Positions 28,886-46,475 of a stretch of 64,000 bases of DNA are shown here, piece after piece. Source of the DNA: Amoeboaphelidium protococcarum X5. Taxonomy: Eukaryota > Fungi > Aphelidiomycota. The stretch is taken from the NCBI GenBank assembly GCA_023515725.1, contig JALDTO010000237.1, positions 479,573 through 543,572 of the forward strand, written 5' to 3'. Position 1 is the stretch's first letter. The number at the start of each line of letters is the position of its first letter. Under the pieces are notes generated by a model, which searched no databases, was not told where the DNA came from, and worked only from the letters and a program-made list of their open reading frames with translations. A program made the position numbers and the translations under genes.

Positions 28886-29515
28886 ATGAATGACAAATTA
28901 AGTGACAAGCTTAGTGAGCAAAGTGAGGAAAATGAAAGACTCCTGTCAGTGATCGATGTGGGCAATGTGGTGCAGGGCTCTTACACAGCTCTTAATACAT
29001 GGCTGATTGATTTCAAAAAATTTATCGCTCGCAGCTCAACAGTCAATGTCGGATTGGGTATAATAGTGGGTGGGATATTTAGTGAACTGGTTTCAAGCTT
29101 CCTAAAGGACATCTTGATGCCCCCACTTGAATTGGGATTCGGCAACTCTCTCGTCAATCTATTCATCGTGTTGAAACCTGGCAAATCTAGGCGTGATTAC
29201 TACACCACTTTAGAAGAGGCTGTGGCGGATGGTGCAGTAACCGAGAATTATGGACAATTTCTGCAGATTCTCGTCTAGTTTCTAATCATTGTATTCATTC
29301 TTTACTGGCTGATAAAAGCATACACCGCATTTACTGAGAAATTCGAGCGAGAGCTGATGTAGATGAACATCAGCAGGGGTGAAAGTGTTAGCTAATCATC
29401 AGCAATATGTCCTCATTGTCTCGAGCAAGTCAAGCTGCTAGCATCTAGATGTCCGCATTGTACCTCCTAAATTAAGTAGTAACAAATAGCTTATGACTCC
29501 ACAGACAAGTCTTGA
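28886..29515 (+). CDS. mscL: Large-conductance mechanosensitive channel MscL (fungal type, with C-terminal CxxC...CxxC)
   Basis: DFKKFIARSSTVNVGLGIIVGGIFSELVSSFLKDILMPP, YTTLEEAVADGAVTENYGQFL, CPHC...ASRCPHCTS. Confidence 0.88.
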
Positions 29516-29744
29516 AATATAATATATCTGCCTCATCTGAATCCCGCGTTCCACAGTTTCACTTTCTTATTTGTTGTTTCAACTCCATTGTTCAAAGCGG
29601 GGGTTCTTTTAGTGTTATCTGATGATCTGAAACCGTGTTGACGCGTTTCAGTCACTCACTCATTCTCTTTATCACACATAAGTTGAAACAACTGTAAACA
29701 TACTTGTTATATCTCATATTCACTTAACTCTTTTACCTTATACT

Positions 29745-36316: not shown

Positions 36317-37298
36317 CTTGTTAGTGTATATACAGAGGTTATAAAATCTGTGAAAAAGAAATGAAATGTGCAAGTACAGTGGAATCTTAGTTTCAATCTC
36401 ATTGGTAGAATTGGAAGGGACGGTCCTTTAAAGCCCCTCGTTTTTACACTGAAATTCAGTTCATGTGAATCGTTCTGTTTCAAGATTGAGTTACAAATAA
36501 TCGATGGTTTCATAGTAGCATCAATATATATTGTTATGCCGACTTTTTGTGCTATTTATGAAAGCATCCTGTAGTATTATCTCTTTAGAAACAACTAATT
36601 ACTATGTCAGATACAGGTATACGTTGAGAATTTATTTCACCGTAAGGTACATGTAAATTCAGTTTTCTAGTTAAGTTCAATCCTTCTCAAAAATGTTGTA
36701 CGCGAAATTGTAATTCAACTTCCGTCTACGAGCCTCACGACGCTCAAAATCCGAGAAATGATGCTTATTCCTTTCAGGCGCACGTAATATAACCACGAAT
36801 GTTCTGGGACATCTTCGGTTGGCGTCCTGTCCGCCAAGGAAGATTTAAGACCCGGTTACCTGCAAATCAGCAAGAGCTTGCATTGTTATGTCACGGAGTT
36901 ATTCGATGGAGAATTAACTTTGGTTGCAGTTGAGTTGACCTGGCGCAGTGGACTTTTTGCATGAAATACTTGATGTCTATGTGCATATCTTGCTGAAATA
37001 CTATCGCGCTGTAATTAATGTTTGGTCGCTATATCAATAAGTATTTCGTTTGCTAGTCATTGTTATTGCATCATACTGTGATTATCTTTGCGTCTGGGTA
37101 AGTTGGGTAAATTGGCACACGTGTTAAGTACTGCTACGGAGGCGCTCATTGGTGCTGCAGATGATGAAGGGCTTATGCAATGAATTTAAGCAAGGTGTCA
37201 TGCTAAATTGGTCAAGGTTAAGGTGATGGTGTCCAGTGCAATGCCAGGTTGAGTTTTTGGGCTTTGTTACGTTGTTGGGACAATTCGAAGATTACAGT

Positions 37299-37383
37299 TG
37301 CTACTACGGGGATATGTGGGTACCCCGATGAAAAGATCGTCGGAGCTTTTTTGAAAGTGTACGAGTGATCGCTGAACCCGCAT
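37299..37383 (+). ncRNA. Orphan Fanzor omegaRNA scaffold / transposon right end (copy 2)
   Basis: 71/85 identical by hand alignment to the reverse complement of 40416-40499; compensatory pair changes; ends in CCCGCAT. Confidence 0.7.
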
Positions 37384-37658
37384 GAGCGTGAGCTGAAAGA
37401 GATGAACATTAGCAAGGGTGAAAGTGTCAGCTACTCATCAGCTGTATGTCCCCATTGTCTCGAGCAAGTCAAACTTCTAGCATCTAGATGTCCTCATTGC
37501 ACCTCTTAGATTAAGTAGTGAAAAATAGCTTTTGACTCCACTGATCAGTCTTGAAATAGAGCAGTTTCCGTCTCTTCTGATTTCGCGTTTCACAATTTCT
37601 GATTCTTCTTTGTTGTTTCAACTCCATTGTTCTGAGCGGGGGTTCTTTTAGTGTTATC
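37384..37658 (+). pseudogene. mscL: 5'-truncated mscL paralog (3' coding part plus flank), homologous to 29345-29619
   Basis: Colinear 275-bp match with mostly synonymous differences; encodes ERELKEMNISKGESVS...CPHC...RCPHCTSQIKQ*. Confidence 0.85.
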
Positions 37659-37696
37659 AACACACTCAAATAACACTAAATATCACAGTAAAAGGC

Positions 37697-38905
37697 ATGG
37701 ATTATTTTGTGTATGAATAGATTGAATAAATTTAGGAGAAGCGATAGTATAGATCCAGGCGAAGAGGTCATACTGCTCCGTTGAAGTTGTCTGATGAGGC
37801 TGCCGGGGCGCTCCGTAAAGGCAGTCAATTGATATCAAATGTATTTCACGCAGTCAAGTAAGGCAGTATTGTCGGAGCTTTAGATGCAGTTACTGATACT
37901 TACAGTGCAGACGATTAAAAATCTGCTGGATATATCTGGAGGCACCAAGAGTCAAAGTCTAATGAAGGATTTTTTAGTCAATTAAAGTCGTTATGGACTG
38001 GACCTGTCAAGAAGGAAGTAAAAGAGGACACTGGCATGAATGCTGCTGATGTAGGAAGAAGTCTGGCGCTAGTTTAGTAACAAGTAGAAAAGGATTAATT
38101 GCGATCAAGTCAAGTGAATTTACTATCACGCTGCTGGGATGAAGACGAGTAATCCACAACGCTCTTAAATGAGCAAGCTCACGAGGAATCCCAGGCGGCA
38201 GCAGATGATTCTGTAAACCAACTGATCGAATAGCTGGATTAGACGTCTCACAGCTTAAAAAAGTCTGAGAAGAGACAGGATCTAGTCAAGTAGAATCACA
38301 GCGATAATCAATTCTCTTTAATGGCGATGTTAGTACGCAGGAATACATTCAACAATTAGAGCTCATCCAGATCGCGGGCTCTATAAATTTATAGCAAGAT
38401 TGAAGACTTGAAAAAGGTAAGCCGCAACGTAGTGTATAAGGCTGAGATTATATGAATTGTGTAGGATCTCCTTGAATATGCTGGGACTTTAAACTCTGAA
38501 TCCTTGGATGATGATATAATACTTGCGCCAAAAGTGGAGCCACGAATACCGCCGCCACCTCCACCTCCAAACTTTGCGTCATTATCACTCAATAAACTGA
38601 GTAGTTCAGAGAAAGTAAAAATGACTGAAGTTGGACGCGGTTAATAATCATCATCAAATGCTGATTTACAGACCTCTATTAGCAACAGATTAAAGTCTTC
38701 GGAGCCGTACTTGAGAAAGACCAACATTTAAAGAAGCCCAGGAGGTAAGGAATTTATTAAAATGACATATTATAATTGATATTGTCTCATAGTAAAAAGT
38801 AATGTAGGCACTCCAATAAGAAAGCCGTCTGATGGTTATTAAGGCCCTGGAAAAGATTTGATACTTGGATTATAGCGAAAATTCAAGTCTATTTGCATCG
38901 ATTGA
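37697..38905 (+). CDS. MTFR1/PRR11-like proline-rich protein (2 introns)
   Basis: PPPPPPP, then LRKTNIQRSPG/GTP across an intron, and GLQRKFKS; GTAAG...TAG introns near 38417-38464 and 38745-38808. Confidence 0.6.
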
Positions 38906-38980
38906 CAAATGATGATATATCTTTAAAGATTTAAGTCAAAATACATTAAATGGCTATATTCTATACAAATTCATTTATCA

Positions 38981-39373
38981 TCATGCGTTTTAGTCTGCGT
39001 GACTCTCGCTCAACTGTTGATACTAAACCGGTCGTTACTAACGCCGCAGCACCGCAATGGTCACTATCGCAGCTACGGCAACCATCACGCTTAAGCCTGA
39101 AGCAATGGCAGCAATACTCACATTCGACTACTATTTCTAAGCCGCGGCATCCAACAATTCCTGCTGAGCCTACCAACTCTCCTAATCATAATCTGTTTCA
39201 ATATTGGCCGTCTTGTCCGGCATACTTGGCGGTGTATCAGTGACTGCCATGCAGCCATTGTCCATGTCCATATCCATGTCAGTGGACATAGTGTTGTTTT
39301 AAGCATATGTCAAAGGGGCATATGGCAATAATGCCATGATAATGAACTATACGAATGTGATGCTTAAGCGCAT
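38981..39373 (-). CDS. Small type-I membrane protein (130 aa)
   Basis: Signal peptide MRLSITFVQFIIMALLPYAPLTYA; TM segment IAAIASGLSVMVAVAAIVTIAVL followed by RR; YQQL motif in the tail. Confidence 0.7.
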
Positions 39374-39724
39374 TTTTAACTGCAATCAATTGTGGTTGCA
39401 ACGTTGACAACGAAGAAACTGATTGTCAAATCTTTAGTATCAGTTGAAGAGCAATCACTAGTGCAATGTCTAATTTTAGCTCGCGTTGATGTTCCGACAC
39501 TACAGGTTAATTTGTGTTAACAGCCTAAACCTGATGAATCGAGTCTAGACACGCATGAGTTAAATGTAAATTGCATTGCCGTGTGTACCACATTATCGCC
39601 GCTACCCTTTAACTTTGGAAAGATCACTCACTATCAAAGTCATTGAAAATCTAAATTAAAAGATCGCACTATGATCAAATAGTTCATATACCATTAATTC
39701 AATACTCAAGTATTGGTAAGACGC

Positions 39725-40126
39725 TCAACTCTTCTACTCATCCAACGATGGCATTTTCAAAATCTTGCGACCTTCATTCTTAAAGTGTTTCGTCATCATT
39801 TTCAAAATCTCATTATCGCGCAAATGCTCAGGCACCTCCTTCTATCCAGCAGTCCAGTAATACAGGTCCCAGTCATTTTCATCAAGTAATCGGTCGTACT
39901 ACTGTAACTACTGATGAGATAGAGAGTGCAAATGCTTTTAGGCAAACGTAGAGCAAAGCAGATCACTCTCCAGAATCCCCCTCTTTCTTGATTAATACAG
40001 CAAACGGGCACGCATTGTGTCAATACTCTCACCATCCCTAGCTATTCTAAGTGGTGGAAGAGGACCACTTTAAACTGACATAAATCGGGACTATCGCGTT
40101 ATTAGATACACACCTTTCCTAATCAT
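39725..40126 (-). CDS. SDH5: Succinate dehydrogenase assembly factor 2
   Basis: [24 protein letters not shown]...YDRLLDENDWDLYYW. Confidence 0.93.
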
Positions 40127-40415
40127 CTTAAATGCTTGAATACTATCGGCAGTGATCTCATCATTAACGAAAGAAGAAAAATACGTCATTCAAACATTTC
40201 GCGACTGATGATCTTCGCAAAAGTCTTTGATTCAAATAGAATGGATCTTCTTCATAAAATGATCATATCTTAAAAATGAACGTTTGATATCATTGTTTTC
40301 TACCACTGATTTAAGACACGAATTGAAAATTGTTTGATATTAGAAGCGTTCGAATCTGTTTTATTAAACGCTAAAAGTTCAACATTGACTTTAATTAGAG
40401 GATACAGAAGCCGCC

Positions 40416-40603
40416 ATGTGGGTTAATCGATCATTGGTACACTTTAAAAAAGCTCCAGCAATCTTTTCATTGGGGTCCCCACATAGCCCCTTAATAGCAG
40501 AGTAACAGTATAGTACGAGCATAACGATAAGCAATTACAAAACACTTCTATGATTTAGTGATCAGATGTTGAGCAAGGCGCAATATAGTCTCTTGCAAGA
40601 CCT
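40416..40603 (-). ncRNA. Putative Fanzor omegaRNA (conserved core 40416-40499; 5' limit unknown; guide would start at 40415)
   Basis: Directly 3' of the Fanzor stop; hairpin GGGGC-UAUGUGGG-GACCCC whose loop is complementary to the terminal CCCACAU; homologous copy at 37299-37383. Confidence 0.7.
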
Positions 40604-42835
40604 TCATATGGACATCACGAACTCCTTATATAGTGTCTAATCCGCTTAGTTCGCAGTAACCAATTTCACTTCTTCCTTAGAAAAACTTCGAGACATAACA
40701 TTATATGATCCAACATTATCCCGATATGCACGAAAATCACCCAACATGAAGTACTCATCAGCACCAAGACAGTTATGTAGCACATTCTGAAACGGATGTT
40801 GTTTCGACGTAAACTCCTCCGTTGTCACGAGCACTTACTTTCCAGATCTAAATATATTAGCTTATGCCATTGCAATAAGTTTCATACGACACTTGTAATG
40901 GCCAAACGCCAATAGAGTCTTCCGCGTATTTTTATGGAGAATATGCCCAGAATTTTATTAACCACGCGAGTGTGTTACCAGTACATCGGCCGTATCACTT
41001 AGAACGGGAGGTAGATTCAAACGCTTTCTCCGTTTCTTCACCATCTTAATAGTCAGAAACTCGGGAAGAATGATTAGATCATAATGCCGCATCAAAAAGT
41101 TGCCAATTCGGTTATGCAAATTCGATACATATGCAGAGAATTTGGTGTAAGCACGACTAATGCCAATATCAGTGGGAACAACATTATTCTTTGATTACTT
41201 CCATGTGTGCCATAATTCTTTCTTCTACGCTTTAAACTCCTCCAGACTCAATTGTCCATTCTGTAAAGCAGCTGCGCGATTATCCATCTAATCTTTCAGA
41301 GACTATGCATTGGAAATCTATTCACTCTTATTCTTATAAAGCTACTTGAAATCAGGCGCAATCGCAATGAATGACCTGCGATCCAAATCGAAGACGGTCA
41401 TGCTCACTCTAACACCTGGATCCACCGAGCAAGTGTTTCCAGTTTAACGGCAACGCGCATCACGGCGGCTTATAAATGATCTAGCACCTTCAAGATTCTC
41501 ATCTGCATTATTCATATCTTGCAGTTGCTAGTAATACCAATCAGTGAATGGACCTTATATACAGGAGGCATCATACGAAACAATCTCAAAGAACTTTTTT
41601 CTTCTTTTCACGAGCTTGAACTCTCTTCCTCTGCCATAGCCAAACTTGATGAAACGGGGCCAGTAGTCATTCTTGCCAGGCTCTTAGAATAGAGGATCTT
41701 TGGCATACAGTTTCCCAAAGCTCTTGAGGAATGAAGGCAGTAGGCGGACGCGATTGCTATCTGGATCTACACGGGCATCTTACGCTTGAAACTGGAGCAT
41801 CTAAAACTAATCATCATCTCTATTTGGCATAAAGTTGTAGTCTTTGATATCACCCTTTGTATACTTCTCATGAGCCGCATAGTAATACGTGCGAGTCGCA
41901 TTAATAATCTCATCTTGCACTGTAGATGGCATTCGCATCCAACGCAATCTTGGGTCGTCATCAGGCACGCGGCACTTTTTGGCTTTGACTTAACTTAGCG
42001 CAACATGGTTCCTTAGCGCTTGTATTGACACCTTTTCTCCTTAATCTCTGGAATCATTCAAAATGTTAATGATGAAATTGACCATTTGAAACTTGAGATC
42101 CAGCCATTCATTGAATTTGTGTATGAACTTCTTATCAGGGAATATACGAATATTAATCGAGCGTATCTGATCATACTGATTCAGTTCGGCAATCTCTCGC
42201 CGATTTTTCATCTTGCCGATTTTTGGTTTCATGTTTTCCAACGCCACTAGAGATTATCCCGAAAGCTGTAGCACTTTCTTCTTCTTCTTCTTCTTCAAAC
42301 TCTTAGATGACGACTATTACTGCTTAGATTTCCATTTAGCCATTAGAGAGTCTGTATCTGATGCAATCTACTGATTCCGCATTTTGGATTCAATGATATT
42401 CTCAATTTAATGCTGCACCTGACTAAAACTTTACTTCTCCTGGCTCTCACTTACGTTTTGTCCCATGTCTTTACGATTCAAATTAGGATTGAACTTTGCT
42501 GTTAAGGAGTGTTCTGTTTATTAAGATTACGGTATTTGCCAGTCCTTGTCAGTGCATTTTAACAACAGTCGTTAATTGAACGCGTCTGTGTTGCCATTCC
42601 AAACATAATGTCCAAACCATTCAGATTTAGTATTATACCAAGGGGCAAATACTGGAGCAAATGCGGCAAATGATGATGCGCCAAGTTCTTTGACTATCCG
42701 AATATCTACTTCATTGATCACCTTAGCACACACGGAGAGAAATCCGGGAATATCTTGATGATATGCTTAAGTTTTGAAATCTTCTAGTGCTGTCTTTGCA
42801 GCCGCAGATAATTCACGTTTTTGGCTTGGCTACAT
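40604..42835 (-). CDS. Fanzor2 / IS607-type TnpB-derived RNA-guided endonuclease (743 aa)
   Basis: IRIFPD N-terminal motif; RuvC-I SVDPGVRVSMTVFD; NLHNRIGNFLMRHYDLIILPEF; TRKTLLAFGHYK; rearranged RuvC-II TTEEFTSK; RuvC-III RDNVGSYNV; open frame with about 30 in-frame TAA/TAG. Confidence 0.88.
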
Positions 42836-43553
42836 TTTCAAATGATCAGTATTGCGATGAAAGAATTAGAACACTGTCAGTAAGCATTGAATACAATGCA
42901 ATGATGAGATGTGACACGACCAGTCATCATTTCATTGTGATATCAATGAGGATGGTCGCAGCTTTAAACCACTCAGGAGTTATTGGTATTGTTAAGGTAT
43001 TGAGACAAGCTCAGAAGATTGGCAATAAAGTAAACGAGTAATTAGATTATTGACTTGTATTGAAGAGTATGTAAAAATATATAGAATCTCATTGATAATC
43101 GTATTTAAAATAAGACTAACTATCATACAAATACTTTATGGATAAAAAATTTCAAAAGGACTTGGTGCACGAATGATTGATCCGCCCAAGTTCGGCAATC
43201 TGAAAATGGGAAATCCCGACGCTCATTTTGAAGTGTTCCGCAGTCACACGCGGGCGTGCAAAGCCTGTCTGGCAGTCCTCTGCTTAGATCTTGTAAGCAT
43301 AACTAATTATTCGAACGCTTTTCAATAGGCATGCTTTCAATCTAATCTGTCAGCCTTCGAAAACGCTCTTAATATTCTTGATAACTAAATTCATCACATG
43401 GCGCTGCTGTCCCTTGGTTTCTTGTTTGTTGTCGACGGAATGTTTTGAATTTCGCGAAACACTCAAAATCATTATTGTTTCACCTGAAACACTGTCTGTC
43501 CTGTCCGTTGTATATAATCGATAACACCCCCTTGATCGATATCTGCACTGGAG

Positions 43554-46475
43554 ATGGGGTTCAATTGGACTTATGCTGGCTTTGTGATCGCTATAGCTAT
43601 TGTCTTGCAGGTCTTTGTCTTTGAGAAGAGTGACTGGTTCACTGACTCTCCGCTGTTGTAAAGAAAGCGCCGTTCCCCAATTCCGACTTATAAACCGCTG
43701 ACTAATGGTACACTGGAAAAACGTACTTACTACTACGGCTGCAGACCTCCTTCATACAGACCTCCATCCTACAGACCTCCTCCTCCGCCCCCTCCTAGGC
43801 CGCCACCTCCTTCTCCTTAGCCTCCTTCTCCTTAGCCACCTGCCCCTTAACCACCTACTCCTTCTACCTAATGTGATCGCTAGACGATTTTTGCTTATGG
43901 GGATACCTCTTTTATTCAGCTGAGATTGACCAACAGTCTATGGGGCTGGTAGAGAAGTAGTTTGAGGTGCAGTGAAAACTGGGTCTCCAGTGCTCTGTAT
44001 ATGAACGCTGTCAACAACATCTTTAGCAGCGGTAGAGTTGTTGGTAATTTACAAGTCAAGTTCTCTTGCTCTGGTACTATTACCGCCCGTTACGTTGGCT
44101 TGAAGTAGTGTAAGAAGACGTTCCGCTCAGTCAATTTCCATGTTGGTTATTCCAGCTGCCCCTCTGTTAATCCGAGCCTATTTACCTGCAGTCCTAATGG
44201 CAGATCTAATGATCCAGCTTGTAGAAAAGACTGTGATAGTGGTCAATGCGATGGTAAGGATATTACGTTGACGTTCACTGGTTGGGATAGCAGGCGCACT
44301 GTATACTTTGTTGCTCACGCTGTATCCAATTCAGATCTGTGCGCTTCTGATGATTGTGGAAGTACTCCGCCATAAACTGTTACCGTCACATCGACTTTGA
44401 CCAAAACTATGGTGAGTACAGTTTTTAATACGATTATTAGGACTAGTACCATCTAGCTGCCCCCTGTCACAATAACGAGGGCCACGACTGTTACTCATAT
44501 AGTTTCCACGACTTTGACAATTCGTCCTCCGCCCGTGACGTCACATATCACAAGAAGTGTGTCGTATCCCGTTACTACCACTGTAACTCTGCCACCAAGA
44601 ACTGTCACAAGTCTGATCACGTTGCCGCCGGTTACTACTACTTATACTGTAACAGTTGAAAGACCTCCAGTAACCACCACTTGGACGCTTACCAACACTT
44701 AGTATGTCACTAGTACTAATACTGAAACTACCACTACATATCTGCCTGCATCTACCTTCACCATAACTGAGACTTCCATTCTGCCTGGTACCGTAACCAC
44801 TATAACTATCACTGAAGATGGTCAAGTGATTACTAGCTACATTACAAGCACTGGAACTATTACTATAACTGGTACTTAGACAGTAACTACAACTAATATT
44901 TAGTACATTACTTTGGATCCTGTCACTGTTACTGTTAATTAGCCTGCTACCACCATTACTACTGCGTTGACTATTACTTAGACGTCTTTGGTGACTGTGA
45001 CTGAAACTTCTCCTGTGTACTCTACTTTCTCTACTACCATTTTTAGTACGACAACGTCTACTGTGCTGGTGCCAACCACTATCATTACGTTTATACCTGG
45101 TGAGACTGCTCTGACCACTGTAACCTCTTTTATGACTTAGACAGTGATGTAGACACTGTACAGCTACATTACTACTACAGAGAGGATCACCGAAACTGTT
45201 ACTGTTAGTGGAGGTGGTGGTGGTCCGCCAGTGACTTCTTACATTACGATTACTTAAGCCCCTGTTACTGTTACTGAGACTCAGTCAATTACTCTGCCTC
45301 AGGTTACTGTGACCGTTACTGTTGCTCCGACTACTATTATCCAAACGTCTACTGTGTTTTAGACACAAACTTATACCATGACGTAGACTATCACTGAATC
45401 TGGTACCACCATTACCACTACTATCTTCAGTACAAGCACTGTATCTGTTCTGGCAACCTCAACATCTACTATCCCATCCACTACTACCACCTATACCCCT
45501 CTGCCTACTCCTACTTGTATCGATGTTGGTGGAGCATATCCTTTTAATGCGTTCTTTAGTGGTTCCTATTCTGCTAGCTCTGATGTTCAGGGAAGACTGG
45601 CTGTTGGTGGTGATGCAGCTTTTGCTGGCGGCTTCTCTATCGCGGATCAGCTTTATGGCATCGATTAATGTAAGTCAGCTACATTAGTCATTGGCGGTAA
45701 ATTGGTAAATTGGTTGACTGGTCGTAACTATTATGGTAATATTGTTGTTGGTGATGACTCTACTGCGAAGCCTTCTGTACCCAATAACAATATCGGTTAT
45801 GTTTTGGAGCCAGATTGTTCTATAAAGAAAATTCCTAATTTTATCAATTTCGATACCATTAGTCAGAAGTTGACTTAATTGTCCCAGAAGATGGCATCTT
45901 GGGTTCCTACTGCTCTGAGTGTTAATGTCAAGTATGGTTTGATGACCATCTAGGTTGGTGGTCTGAATCGCTATGAAATTATCAATATTTAGAACGGATC
46001 CATGTTTACCTAAAGAATGATCAACGACTTTGCGATTGAAGGTGCTACCAACAATACCATCCTCGTGTTTAACATCTTCGGGTCCTCTGGTGGATTCGTC
46101 GATATGAACATGGATGCGATGATTGACATTCCTACTATCTTCAATTTTCCTAATGCTACTTCTCTGGATATCAATGGAGTAGCTGTTCGTGGCATGGTTT
46201 TGGCACCATTCGCTAATGTTAATGCTGGACCTGGTGTTGTTTGGGGCCCAGTGTATGCTGAAAGTGCTGCCGGACCTTTACAGATCAATCTGGTTCCAGA
46301 ATTTCCATTGTGCTCTAATCCTGATTCTATTTATGGCCTATAAACCCCAGCGATGTCATAGACGACAGATAGCAGCAGTGGATCTCTGCCAATGAGAATC
46401 AATTTTAATTTTGGATTTGAATTGATTGTCGCTTTGACTATGCTGCTCTTTGGAGTATTCTACTTAACGATGTGA
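43554..46475 (+). CDS. Cell-surface adhesin-like protein: Pro-rich segment, Cys-containing domain, Thr-rich stalk, choice-of-anchor A domain, hydrophobic C-terminus (973 aa; copy 1)
   Basis: FNAFFSG...SDVQGRLAVGGDA...IFNFPNAT...GMVLAPFANV...GPLQIN matches the choice-of-anchor A / ice-binding-like fold; hydrophobic N- and C-termini. Confidence 0.85.

Follow-up and report, generated by a model that had tools for sequence, protein, structure and literature searches.

A right-end RNA module shared by nuclease-bearing and gene-less transposons of Amoeboaphelidium protococcarum, a predicted guide-RNA scaffold for a Fanzor2-like protein

Introduction

Fanzor proteins are defined by a DPG motif, a rearranged glutamate and an RD motif (PMC10711439), and their omegaRNAs are not all built alike, a pseudoknot being reported for the RNAs of TnpB and Fanzor2 and absent from those of Fanzor1 (PMC10432273, PMC10711439, PMC11832414). 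Such RNAs may also be carried by elements that have no nuclease gene, as the ghost RNAs of the Spu-1 elements of Spizellomyces punctatus functioned with the SpuFz1 protein in human cells (PMC10432273). Here, we describe a 64,000-nucleotide (nt) stretch, referred to as the window, from the 23.6-Mb assembly of Amoeboaphelidium protococcarum, a parasite of algae that reads TAA and TAG as Gln (translation table 6), in which one short RNA module of predicted fold closes both a transposon bearing a Fanzor2-like gene and a ghost element without genes. A preliminary description, made from the letters of the window, had noticed two copies of this module and read them as omegaRNA scaffolds with a pseudoknot, a feature it took as established for TnpB and Fanzor RNAs alike, which is right for TnpB and Fanzor2 and wrong for Fanzor1. 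The observation proves real and largely as described, with a larger family behind it; the interpretation keeps its scaffold, boundary, first hairpin and pseudoknot, and loses a second hairpin and the argument that two copies could prove the fold by covariation.

Our reading, to which we give a probability of roughly 0.8, is that this 85-nt stretch is at once the right end of a small DNA transposon and the guide-RNA scaffold of a Fanzor2-like protein, with ghost copies that could be loaded in trans. By analogy with TnpB and Fanzor2, a transcript running through the right end would be trimmed to the scaffold plus 15-20 nt of host flank and bound through its pseudoknot by the Fanzor2-like protein, after which the flank would guide cutting of the same site when empty, beside an A-rich, G-ending motif, and repair from the filled copy would restore the element. 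Ghosts of the gene-less family would be mobilised through the same ends and retain an RNA probably loadable in trans by the protein of the nuclease-bearing family, the mobilising enzyme itself presumably being encoded outside all of the element families described below.

A common boundary at the right end

The two copies in the window, at 40499-40416 on the minus strand and 37299-37383 on the plus strand, align with 71 identities, 13 mismatches and 1 gap (84% identical), and the local alignment score of 111 compares with a maximum of 36 in 50 shuffles against the whole window. The minus-strand copy lies behind the Fanzor gene, whose TGA stop (40606-40604) is followed after 105 nt by the conserved stretch, which finishes about 188 nt past the stop. 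Homology between the two ceases at CCC(A/G)CAT-G, at 40415 and 37384. These three observations agree with what was first reported, and the modules can be set at 40415-40499 (minus strand; a 76-nt core begins at 40490) and, for the ghost, 37299-37384 (plus strand).

Beyond the window, a covariance model run over the genome recovers 46 right ends, comprising 27 of family A (the nuclease-bearing elements), 16 of family B (the ghosts) and 3 of a third type; the number of independent insertions is below 46 because some right ends are duplicates on homologous contigs. Most right ends of families A and B stop no more than one base from the terminal G and run on into unrelated flanks, and the more than 30 loci read (the flanks of loci L056 and L071 read N) share one 3' boundary with flanks that are unrelated. 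In family A the ends read CCC(A/G)CATG, with one CATT variant, before unrelated sequence begins, and an environmental sample carries the identical family A boundary with a different flank. BLAST similarity between families A and B is confined to the last 85 nt, to which a short left-end motif can be added. The module thus occupies the position of an omegaRNA or right-end element RNA (reRNA), at the right end of the element, downstream of the nuclease and with a variable flank beyond, and it closes families A, B and C (the last introduced below) at a fixed base. Comparison of these ends supports both the right-end scaffold as first proposed and the placing of the scaffold/guide boundary at the terminal G.

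Rfam covariance models searched over 36800-43300 at E up to 1 gave no match. Related loci were not found in viral and bacterial genome collections. When metagenome and viral contigs were scanned for the motif, 59 matches came up, about the number expected by chance, none with a nearby Fanzor or a correctly spaced pseudoknot.

The fold of the right-end RNA

In the predicted fold, hairpin P1 (40472-40490, minus strand) pairs GGGGC with G-A-CCCC, leaving a bulged A and an 8-nt loop whose last seven nucleotides (40484-40478) form the 5' strand of the pseudoknot. The long stem P2 (40429-40463) follows, capped by a GCUUU/AAAGU hairpin that the preliminary description had rightly seen as common to the copies and had drawn as a hairpin of its own; the 3' pseudoknot strand, CCCACAU (40416-40422), stands next to the near-invariant terminal G at 40415. 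The ghost module has P1 at 37308-37326, P2 at 37335-37370 and pseudoknot strands at 37314-37320 and 37377-37383. A 1-nt loop crosses the 7-base-pair (bp) pseudoknot helix with no gap to P1, a geometry that suits an H-type pseudoknot.

P1, P2 and the pseudoknot keep their pairing across families A, B and C. All seven pairs of the pseudoknot, which joins the P1 loop to the end of the element, form in 21 of 23 intact distinct sequences. P1 with the outer part of P2 is 92% paired, with three two-sided changes, against 29-50% in a slid control; the outer P2 helix has two-sided changes in family C. Within P1 the GGGG/CCCC pairs are invariant in all intact copies and the inner pair varies, being C-G in family A, A-U or G-U in family B (broken in one copy) and A-U in family C.

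The pseudoknot could not be argued from the two window copies, which are 84% identical and differ by no two-sided change in it. The CCCGCAU end of the plus-strand copy is a private variant, shared with its duplicate on the homologous contig C192 and one family A copy; because the other family B copies carry CCCACAU, as family A does, the pair offers no such change. The evidence comes instead from family C, whose intact Fanzor, found by a search with the catalytic region, has 48% protein identity to that of family A. Its right end retains GGGG...ACCCC, UGAAAAGA and AAAGUG, but its loop reads UUUUGGU and its end ACCAAAA, against AUGUGGG and CCCACAU in families A and B, such that both partners are exchanged in three of the seven pseudoknot pairs (A-U to U-A once, G-C to U-A twice), whereas crossed combinations of A and C loops and ends pair at only three positions. 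As a rough estimate, three matching changes at those positions would arise by chance about once in 1,000, a figure that describes one comparison of two lineages and is no formal test. The loop-to-end pseudoknot first proposed is thus supported by natural two-sided swaps.

Could the same ends form another RNA structure? The preliminary description had drawn P1, a second hairpin (CAAU/AUUG around GAAAAG) and the GCUUU/AAAGU hairpin, and one pair of that second hairpin, columns 32/43, is indeed paired in 24 of 24 sequences, as A-U in family A and G-C in families B and C. The hairpin can be drawn in A and B; in family C two of its four pairs fail, it uses bases that belong to P1 and P2, and its fold reaches -5.4 and -6.7 kcal/mol where the fold with P2 reaches -15.2 and -19.7, a gap of 10-13 kcal/mol, and we have rejected it as a conserved element. 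A plain long-range helix lacking a pseudoknot can draw on the fact that unconstrained folding pairs the loop with the end, but the invariant GGGG/CCCC with its covarying inner pair (C-G, A-U, G-U) indicates that P1 and the end helix are both kept. We regard an omegaRNA with either of these folds as improbable.

Several points nonetheless weigh against the scaffold reading. The z-scores of isolated folding are weak (-1.4 and -0.8), and P1 does not form in the unconstrained fold. Formal significance for covariation is out of reach because only three independent lineages exist, and Fisher tests count related copies as independent, which overstates the effect. Constraint at the DNA level is mixed in, since the 3' arm of P2 is also the terminal inverted repeat (40442-40426 on the right). 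The ends of the Tilletia and Borealophlyctis homologs, which are more distant, escape the covariance model, and the structure model of the protein is of low confidence (pLDDT 60, pTM 0.34). The support comes from comparing sequences; expression and loading in trans are inferred from systems already characterised.

As to how such an RNA might be made, the scaffold of families A and B contains a U6-U7 run at which polymerase III should terminate, and this suggests a polymerase II precursor.

Two sets of sequences outside this genome invite comparison with the module. Tilletia loci (L090, L092, L093) have a conserved end of about 80 nt, 25-100 nt past the stop and finishing CTGAG, in which two long-range pairings are possible, CACAU/AUGUG and CUCAG/CUGAG; these ends cannot be aligned to the present RNA and are not counted as evidence, and the equivalent motif of T. 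walkeri (L098) and the stop codon overlap. Metagenome Helitrons (L154:5150-5340 and L121:940-1240, the former with a Rep-helicase of 1,649 aa) contain 93-bp tandem repeats in which a G-rich hairpin followed by AUGAAAAGA resembles P1 and its linker, a likeness that we treat as chance because the sequences were selected by the search pattern.

The family A element and its protein

The element in the window occupies 40415-43186 on the minus strand (2,772 bp) and holds one open reading frame (ORF) and no transposase; about 23 near-full-length copies exist in the genome at 93-100% identity. The ORF (40604-42835, minus strand) encodes 743 aa with 33 TAA or TAG codons read as Gln, for which reason it was searched either as stop-free pieces or through two correctly translated database copies (P0013, P0004); the stop-free pieces gave no useful match in Pfam and PDB searches. 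RuvC-I is present as VDPG (D472), the rearranged RuvC-II glutamate as TEEFTSKQH (E673, six residues before the zinc-finger position) and RuvC-III as RDNVG (D706), the register of the last two being fixed by relatives that retain the zinc-finger cysteines. A full ORF with all three catalytic motifs is found in at least eight family A copies. The C4 zinc finger itself is lost, its cysteines being replaced in families A and C and in the Tilletia homologs and kept in P0008, P0012 and the Borealophlyctis protein P0045; relatives in Tilletia and Borealophlyctis have about 28% identity.

When a profile of the family was compared with solved Fanzors, only ApmFz2 (PDB 9B0L) matched, at E 4e-14, and no Fanzor1 chain did at E up to 10. 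Comparison of the predicted structure points the same way, Foldseek placing 9B0L first (1e-10) and SpuFz1 at rank 29 (6e-4), and VIA-align placing ApmFz2 first with Z 14.6 and a high root-mean-square deviation. By profile and predicted fold, the protein appears nearer to Fanzor2 and TnpB than to Fanzor1 and is referred to here as Fanzor2-like. A pseudoknot is what such a protein leads one to expect, and protein class and RNA fold agree, since the RNAs of Fanzor2 and TnpB have one and those of Fanzor1 do not.

The predicted guide of this copy is the host flank at 40395-40414 (minus strand), placed, like the other guides here, by TnpB/Fanzor2 precedent; it matches the homologous locus on contig C192, an empty site from which the element is absent, save for a 1-nt insertion. 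A further match of 13 of 15 bases lies at 45628-45642 after TTTTGCTG, within a long ORF that is duplicated nearby, with an estimated probability of about 0.1 of arising by chance in the window. One family A copy (L076, C142:714940) has a family B-like left end (GGCCGATCTCTT...), suggesting exchange or an older shared end. Two loci are arranged head-to-tail, a full copy followed directly by a 5'-truncated one at L071 (C154:389715-394240) and a 168-bp left-end fragment ahead of a full copy at L068 (C207:599599-602530).

Relics of family C-like Fanzors, all frameshifted, are present at L087, L088 and L089, the last two interrupted in the RuvC region, at one common position, by an insert of about 500 bp.

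Ghost elements of family B

The plus-strand copy had been described as having no nuclease upstream. This is true, but it is not an isolated relic: it belongs to family B, a multicopy family (16 right ends) of non-coding elements of about 1.17 kb that are 79-94% alike and share the right end and left-end motif of family A, as expected of ghosts. The family has no long ORF and no match to Fanzor by tblastn. A coding parent was sought in a long copy on C214, which carries an unrelated 2-kb insert; with no Fanzor similarity in family B, the candidate was rejected. One family B right end, of 122 nt, follows at a distance of 550 nt the C-terminal part of a PIF1/Helitron-like helicase ORF (L085:1-1259, C207:41500-42760), which was likewise rejected as a partner, the adjacency looking accidental because the helicase is single-copy. 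A family B left end of 125 bp (G000, C158:50999-51121) has no matching body or right end that could be found on that contig.

The copy in the window retains the right 512 bp of the element (36873-37384, plus strand), its left part missing. Ten full family B copies vary at 11 of 87 columns in the RNA part against 465 of 1,106 in the body, with identities of 95.9% (96%) and 85%, the best body window reaching 94.3%; the P1 half, lying 48-87 nt inside the end, and the terminal half are conserved to the same degree. This excess fits selection on the ghost RNA, in copies that are related and in which constraint from a transposase is not fully separable.

Such constraint is the substance of a second explanation, which holds that the right end is conserved as DNA only, as a transposase recognition end made of binding repeats or of an IS605-like single-strand hairpin with guide bases that pair to the cleavage site, and that no ghost RNA is ever loaded. 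The ends are what non-autonomous elements invariably retain, and each of the three families has an inverted copy of the 3' arm of P2 at its left end (14 of 17 positions in A, 13 of 13 in C); in IS200/IS605 elements the same bases serve both end recognition and the guide RNA. The two ends are not treated equally, however, since the left end shares only about 20 nt and, at 84% identity, is no more conserved than the body, whereas the right is conserved over 85 nt that include P1 and its loop. As DNA, moreover, the family A and B ends fold poorly into P1 and P2, and G-U pairs are tolerated at several positions of the fold. We consider the DNA-only explanation unlikely, at a level slightly above that of the alternative RNA folds, and prefer a guide-RNA scaffold that doubles as a transposon end. 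The SpuFz1 ghost RNAs set a precedent that makes loading in trans plausible, and by this analogy the family A protein would probably load the ghost RNA, each ghost with its own guide.

In the window, the host flank that is predicted to serve this ghost as guide (37385-37404, plus strand) is identical at 16 of 20 positions to the paralogous, uninterrupted site at 29346-29365, which an A-rich target-like motif precedes. The two sites begin a diverged 274-bp duplicate of part of a host ORF (29345-29619 and 37385-37658, with 233 identities and 40 mismatches), one copy of which is interrupted at its start by the ghost element and the other intact. It might be supposed that the host has co-opted this ghost as a regulator directing the nuclease to the intact paralog at 29346, the more so as 11 of the 12 bases next to the scaffold match and the homologous locus on C192 holds the ghost copy as well. 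Every guide necessarily repeats the site in which its element landed, though, so a match to a duplicated site is to be expected, and other ghost copies have unrelated flanks, making co-option a very remote prospect beside an ordinary ghost insertion.

Ends, targets and the mobilising enzyme

The left end of the family A element (43165-43186, minus strand) consists of GGCGG and 17 nt that repeat the right subterminal sequence, imperfectly and in inverted orientation, with an A-rich target motif before most copies. At the insertion sites, A-rich sequence lies 4-7 nt ahead of a G, a bias that the right flanks lack. Elements of families A and B have a fixed terminal pentamer, ACATG, and duplicate 0-8 nt of target; past the shared G or TG, the mean further duplication is 1.43 against 0.46 in permuted flanks. 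Family C, for which two sites were compared (a family C end on C192 and the empty site on C235 were left out) and whose second insertion is present in another strain, is flanked by direct repeats of 6 and 8 nt, AAAAGA at one site and AGAAGAAC at the other. These duplicated target bases supply four of the seven pseudoknot pairs in the two insertions, and a decayed relative of family C in a non-matching site has no pseudoknot.

No transposase or recombinase gene was found inside families A, B or C. Crossover of the IS607 type, at a fixed GG without duplication, does not describe these insertions, given the 0-8 nt duplicated in A and B and the 6 and 8 bp repeats in C, and a search for a serine recombinase (PF00239) in the element and genome gave no match, with a control positive in 12 of 14 genomes and a miss being no proof of absence. 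The ends also differ from those of Helitron and Helitron2: CACATG or AAAAG closes the element 11-14 nt beyond the repeat, and neither a terminal hairpin nor CTRR is present. Cryptons have terminal direct repeats of 4-6 bp; those of family C measure 6 and 8 bp, and those of A and B are partial and variable. The end design resembles a tyrosine-recombinase site (PMC3212892). Such an enzyme is the likeliest single candidate, though one to which we give clearly less than even odds, with DDE and rolling-circle enzymes as its main rivals; one tyrosine recombinase match exists in the genome (C249:842461), outside the elements.

More tentatively still, the elements may represent a zinc-less Fanzor2 lineage of fungi and aphelids on an unclassified transposon, perhaps moved in trans by a tyrosine recombinase, with a minimal scaffold of about 76 nt and, in family C, a pseudoknot completed by the target. 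If so, the guide RNA of family C would work only after landing in its preferred A-rich target, coupling target choice to activation of the nuclease, and families A and B would instead have those bases fixed inside the element.

Comparison with known systems

The nearest solved protein is that of the mimivirus Fanzor2 ApmFz2 (PDB 9B0L; PMC11832414), which shares the DPG and rearranged glutamate and whose omegaRNA pairs a 5' loop with the last scaffold bases beside the guide, as predicted here. Its scaffold is 205 nt long, against a conserved core of about 76 nt with seven predicted pseudoknot pairs; the present protein lacks the CxxC zinc finger and has an N-terminal extension of about 220 aa, and the IS607 serine recombinase was not found in element or genome. 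Published support for a Fanzor2 pseudoknot consists of one structure and manual prediction, to which the natural swaps add, and a scaffold of this size would rank among the shortest for a pseudoknotted Fanzor2, useful for compact editors.

Family B is closest to the Spu-1 ghosts (SpuFz1; PMC10432273), likewise a gene-less family with related but distinct ends, a retained right-end RNA and no transposase inside the elements. SpuFz1 is, however, a Fanzor1 whose RNA has no pseudoknot, whereas here a pseudoknot and a Fanzor2-like protein are predicted, and the 30-nt terminal inverted repeats of Spu-1 contrast with imperfect repeats offset by 5 nt at the right end. Families A and B offer a natural test of whether gene-less ghosts are maintained by a nuclease supplied in trans, and the base-level boundaries, swap-backed fold and target motif of a young, multicopy Fanzor2-like system make direct reconstitution possible.

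Fanzor2* proteins in non-IS607 transposons of Chloropicon and Mercenaria, together with the ISXfa1 reRNA (PMC10711439), are alike in pairing a non-IS607 Fanzor2-type nuclease with a predicted pseudoknot and in having fixed flanking or duplicated target bases join the scaffold, but in the present elements the target duplication has no constant length, ranging over 0-8 nt in A and B and measuring 6 and 8 nt in C. Cryptons (PMC3212892) share short direct end repeats with family C, whose joined ends would give two inverted repeats around a short spacer, as in a recombinase site, and the genome has one tyrosine recombinase match outside the elements; Cryptons are described as having no terminal inverted repeats, and families A, B and C hold no recombinase gene. 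A right-end guide RNA, its pseudoknot and ghosts are, then, already published concepts; less usual are the absence of a detectable transposase, the lost zinc finger, the core of only about 76 nt and the pseudoknot pairs that the target supplies at the two family C sites compared.

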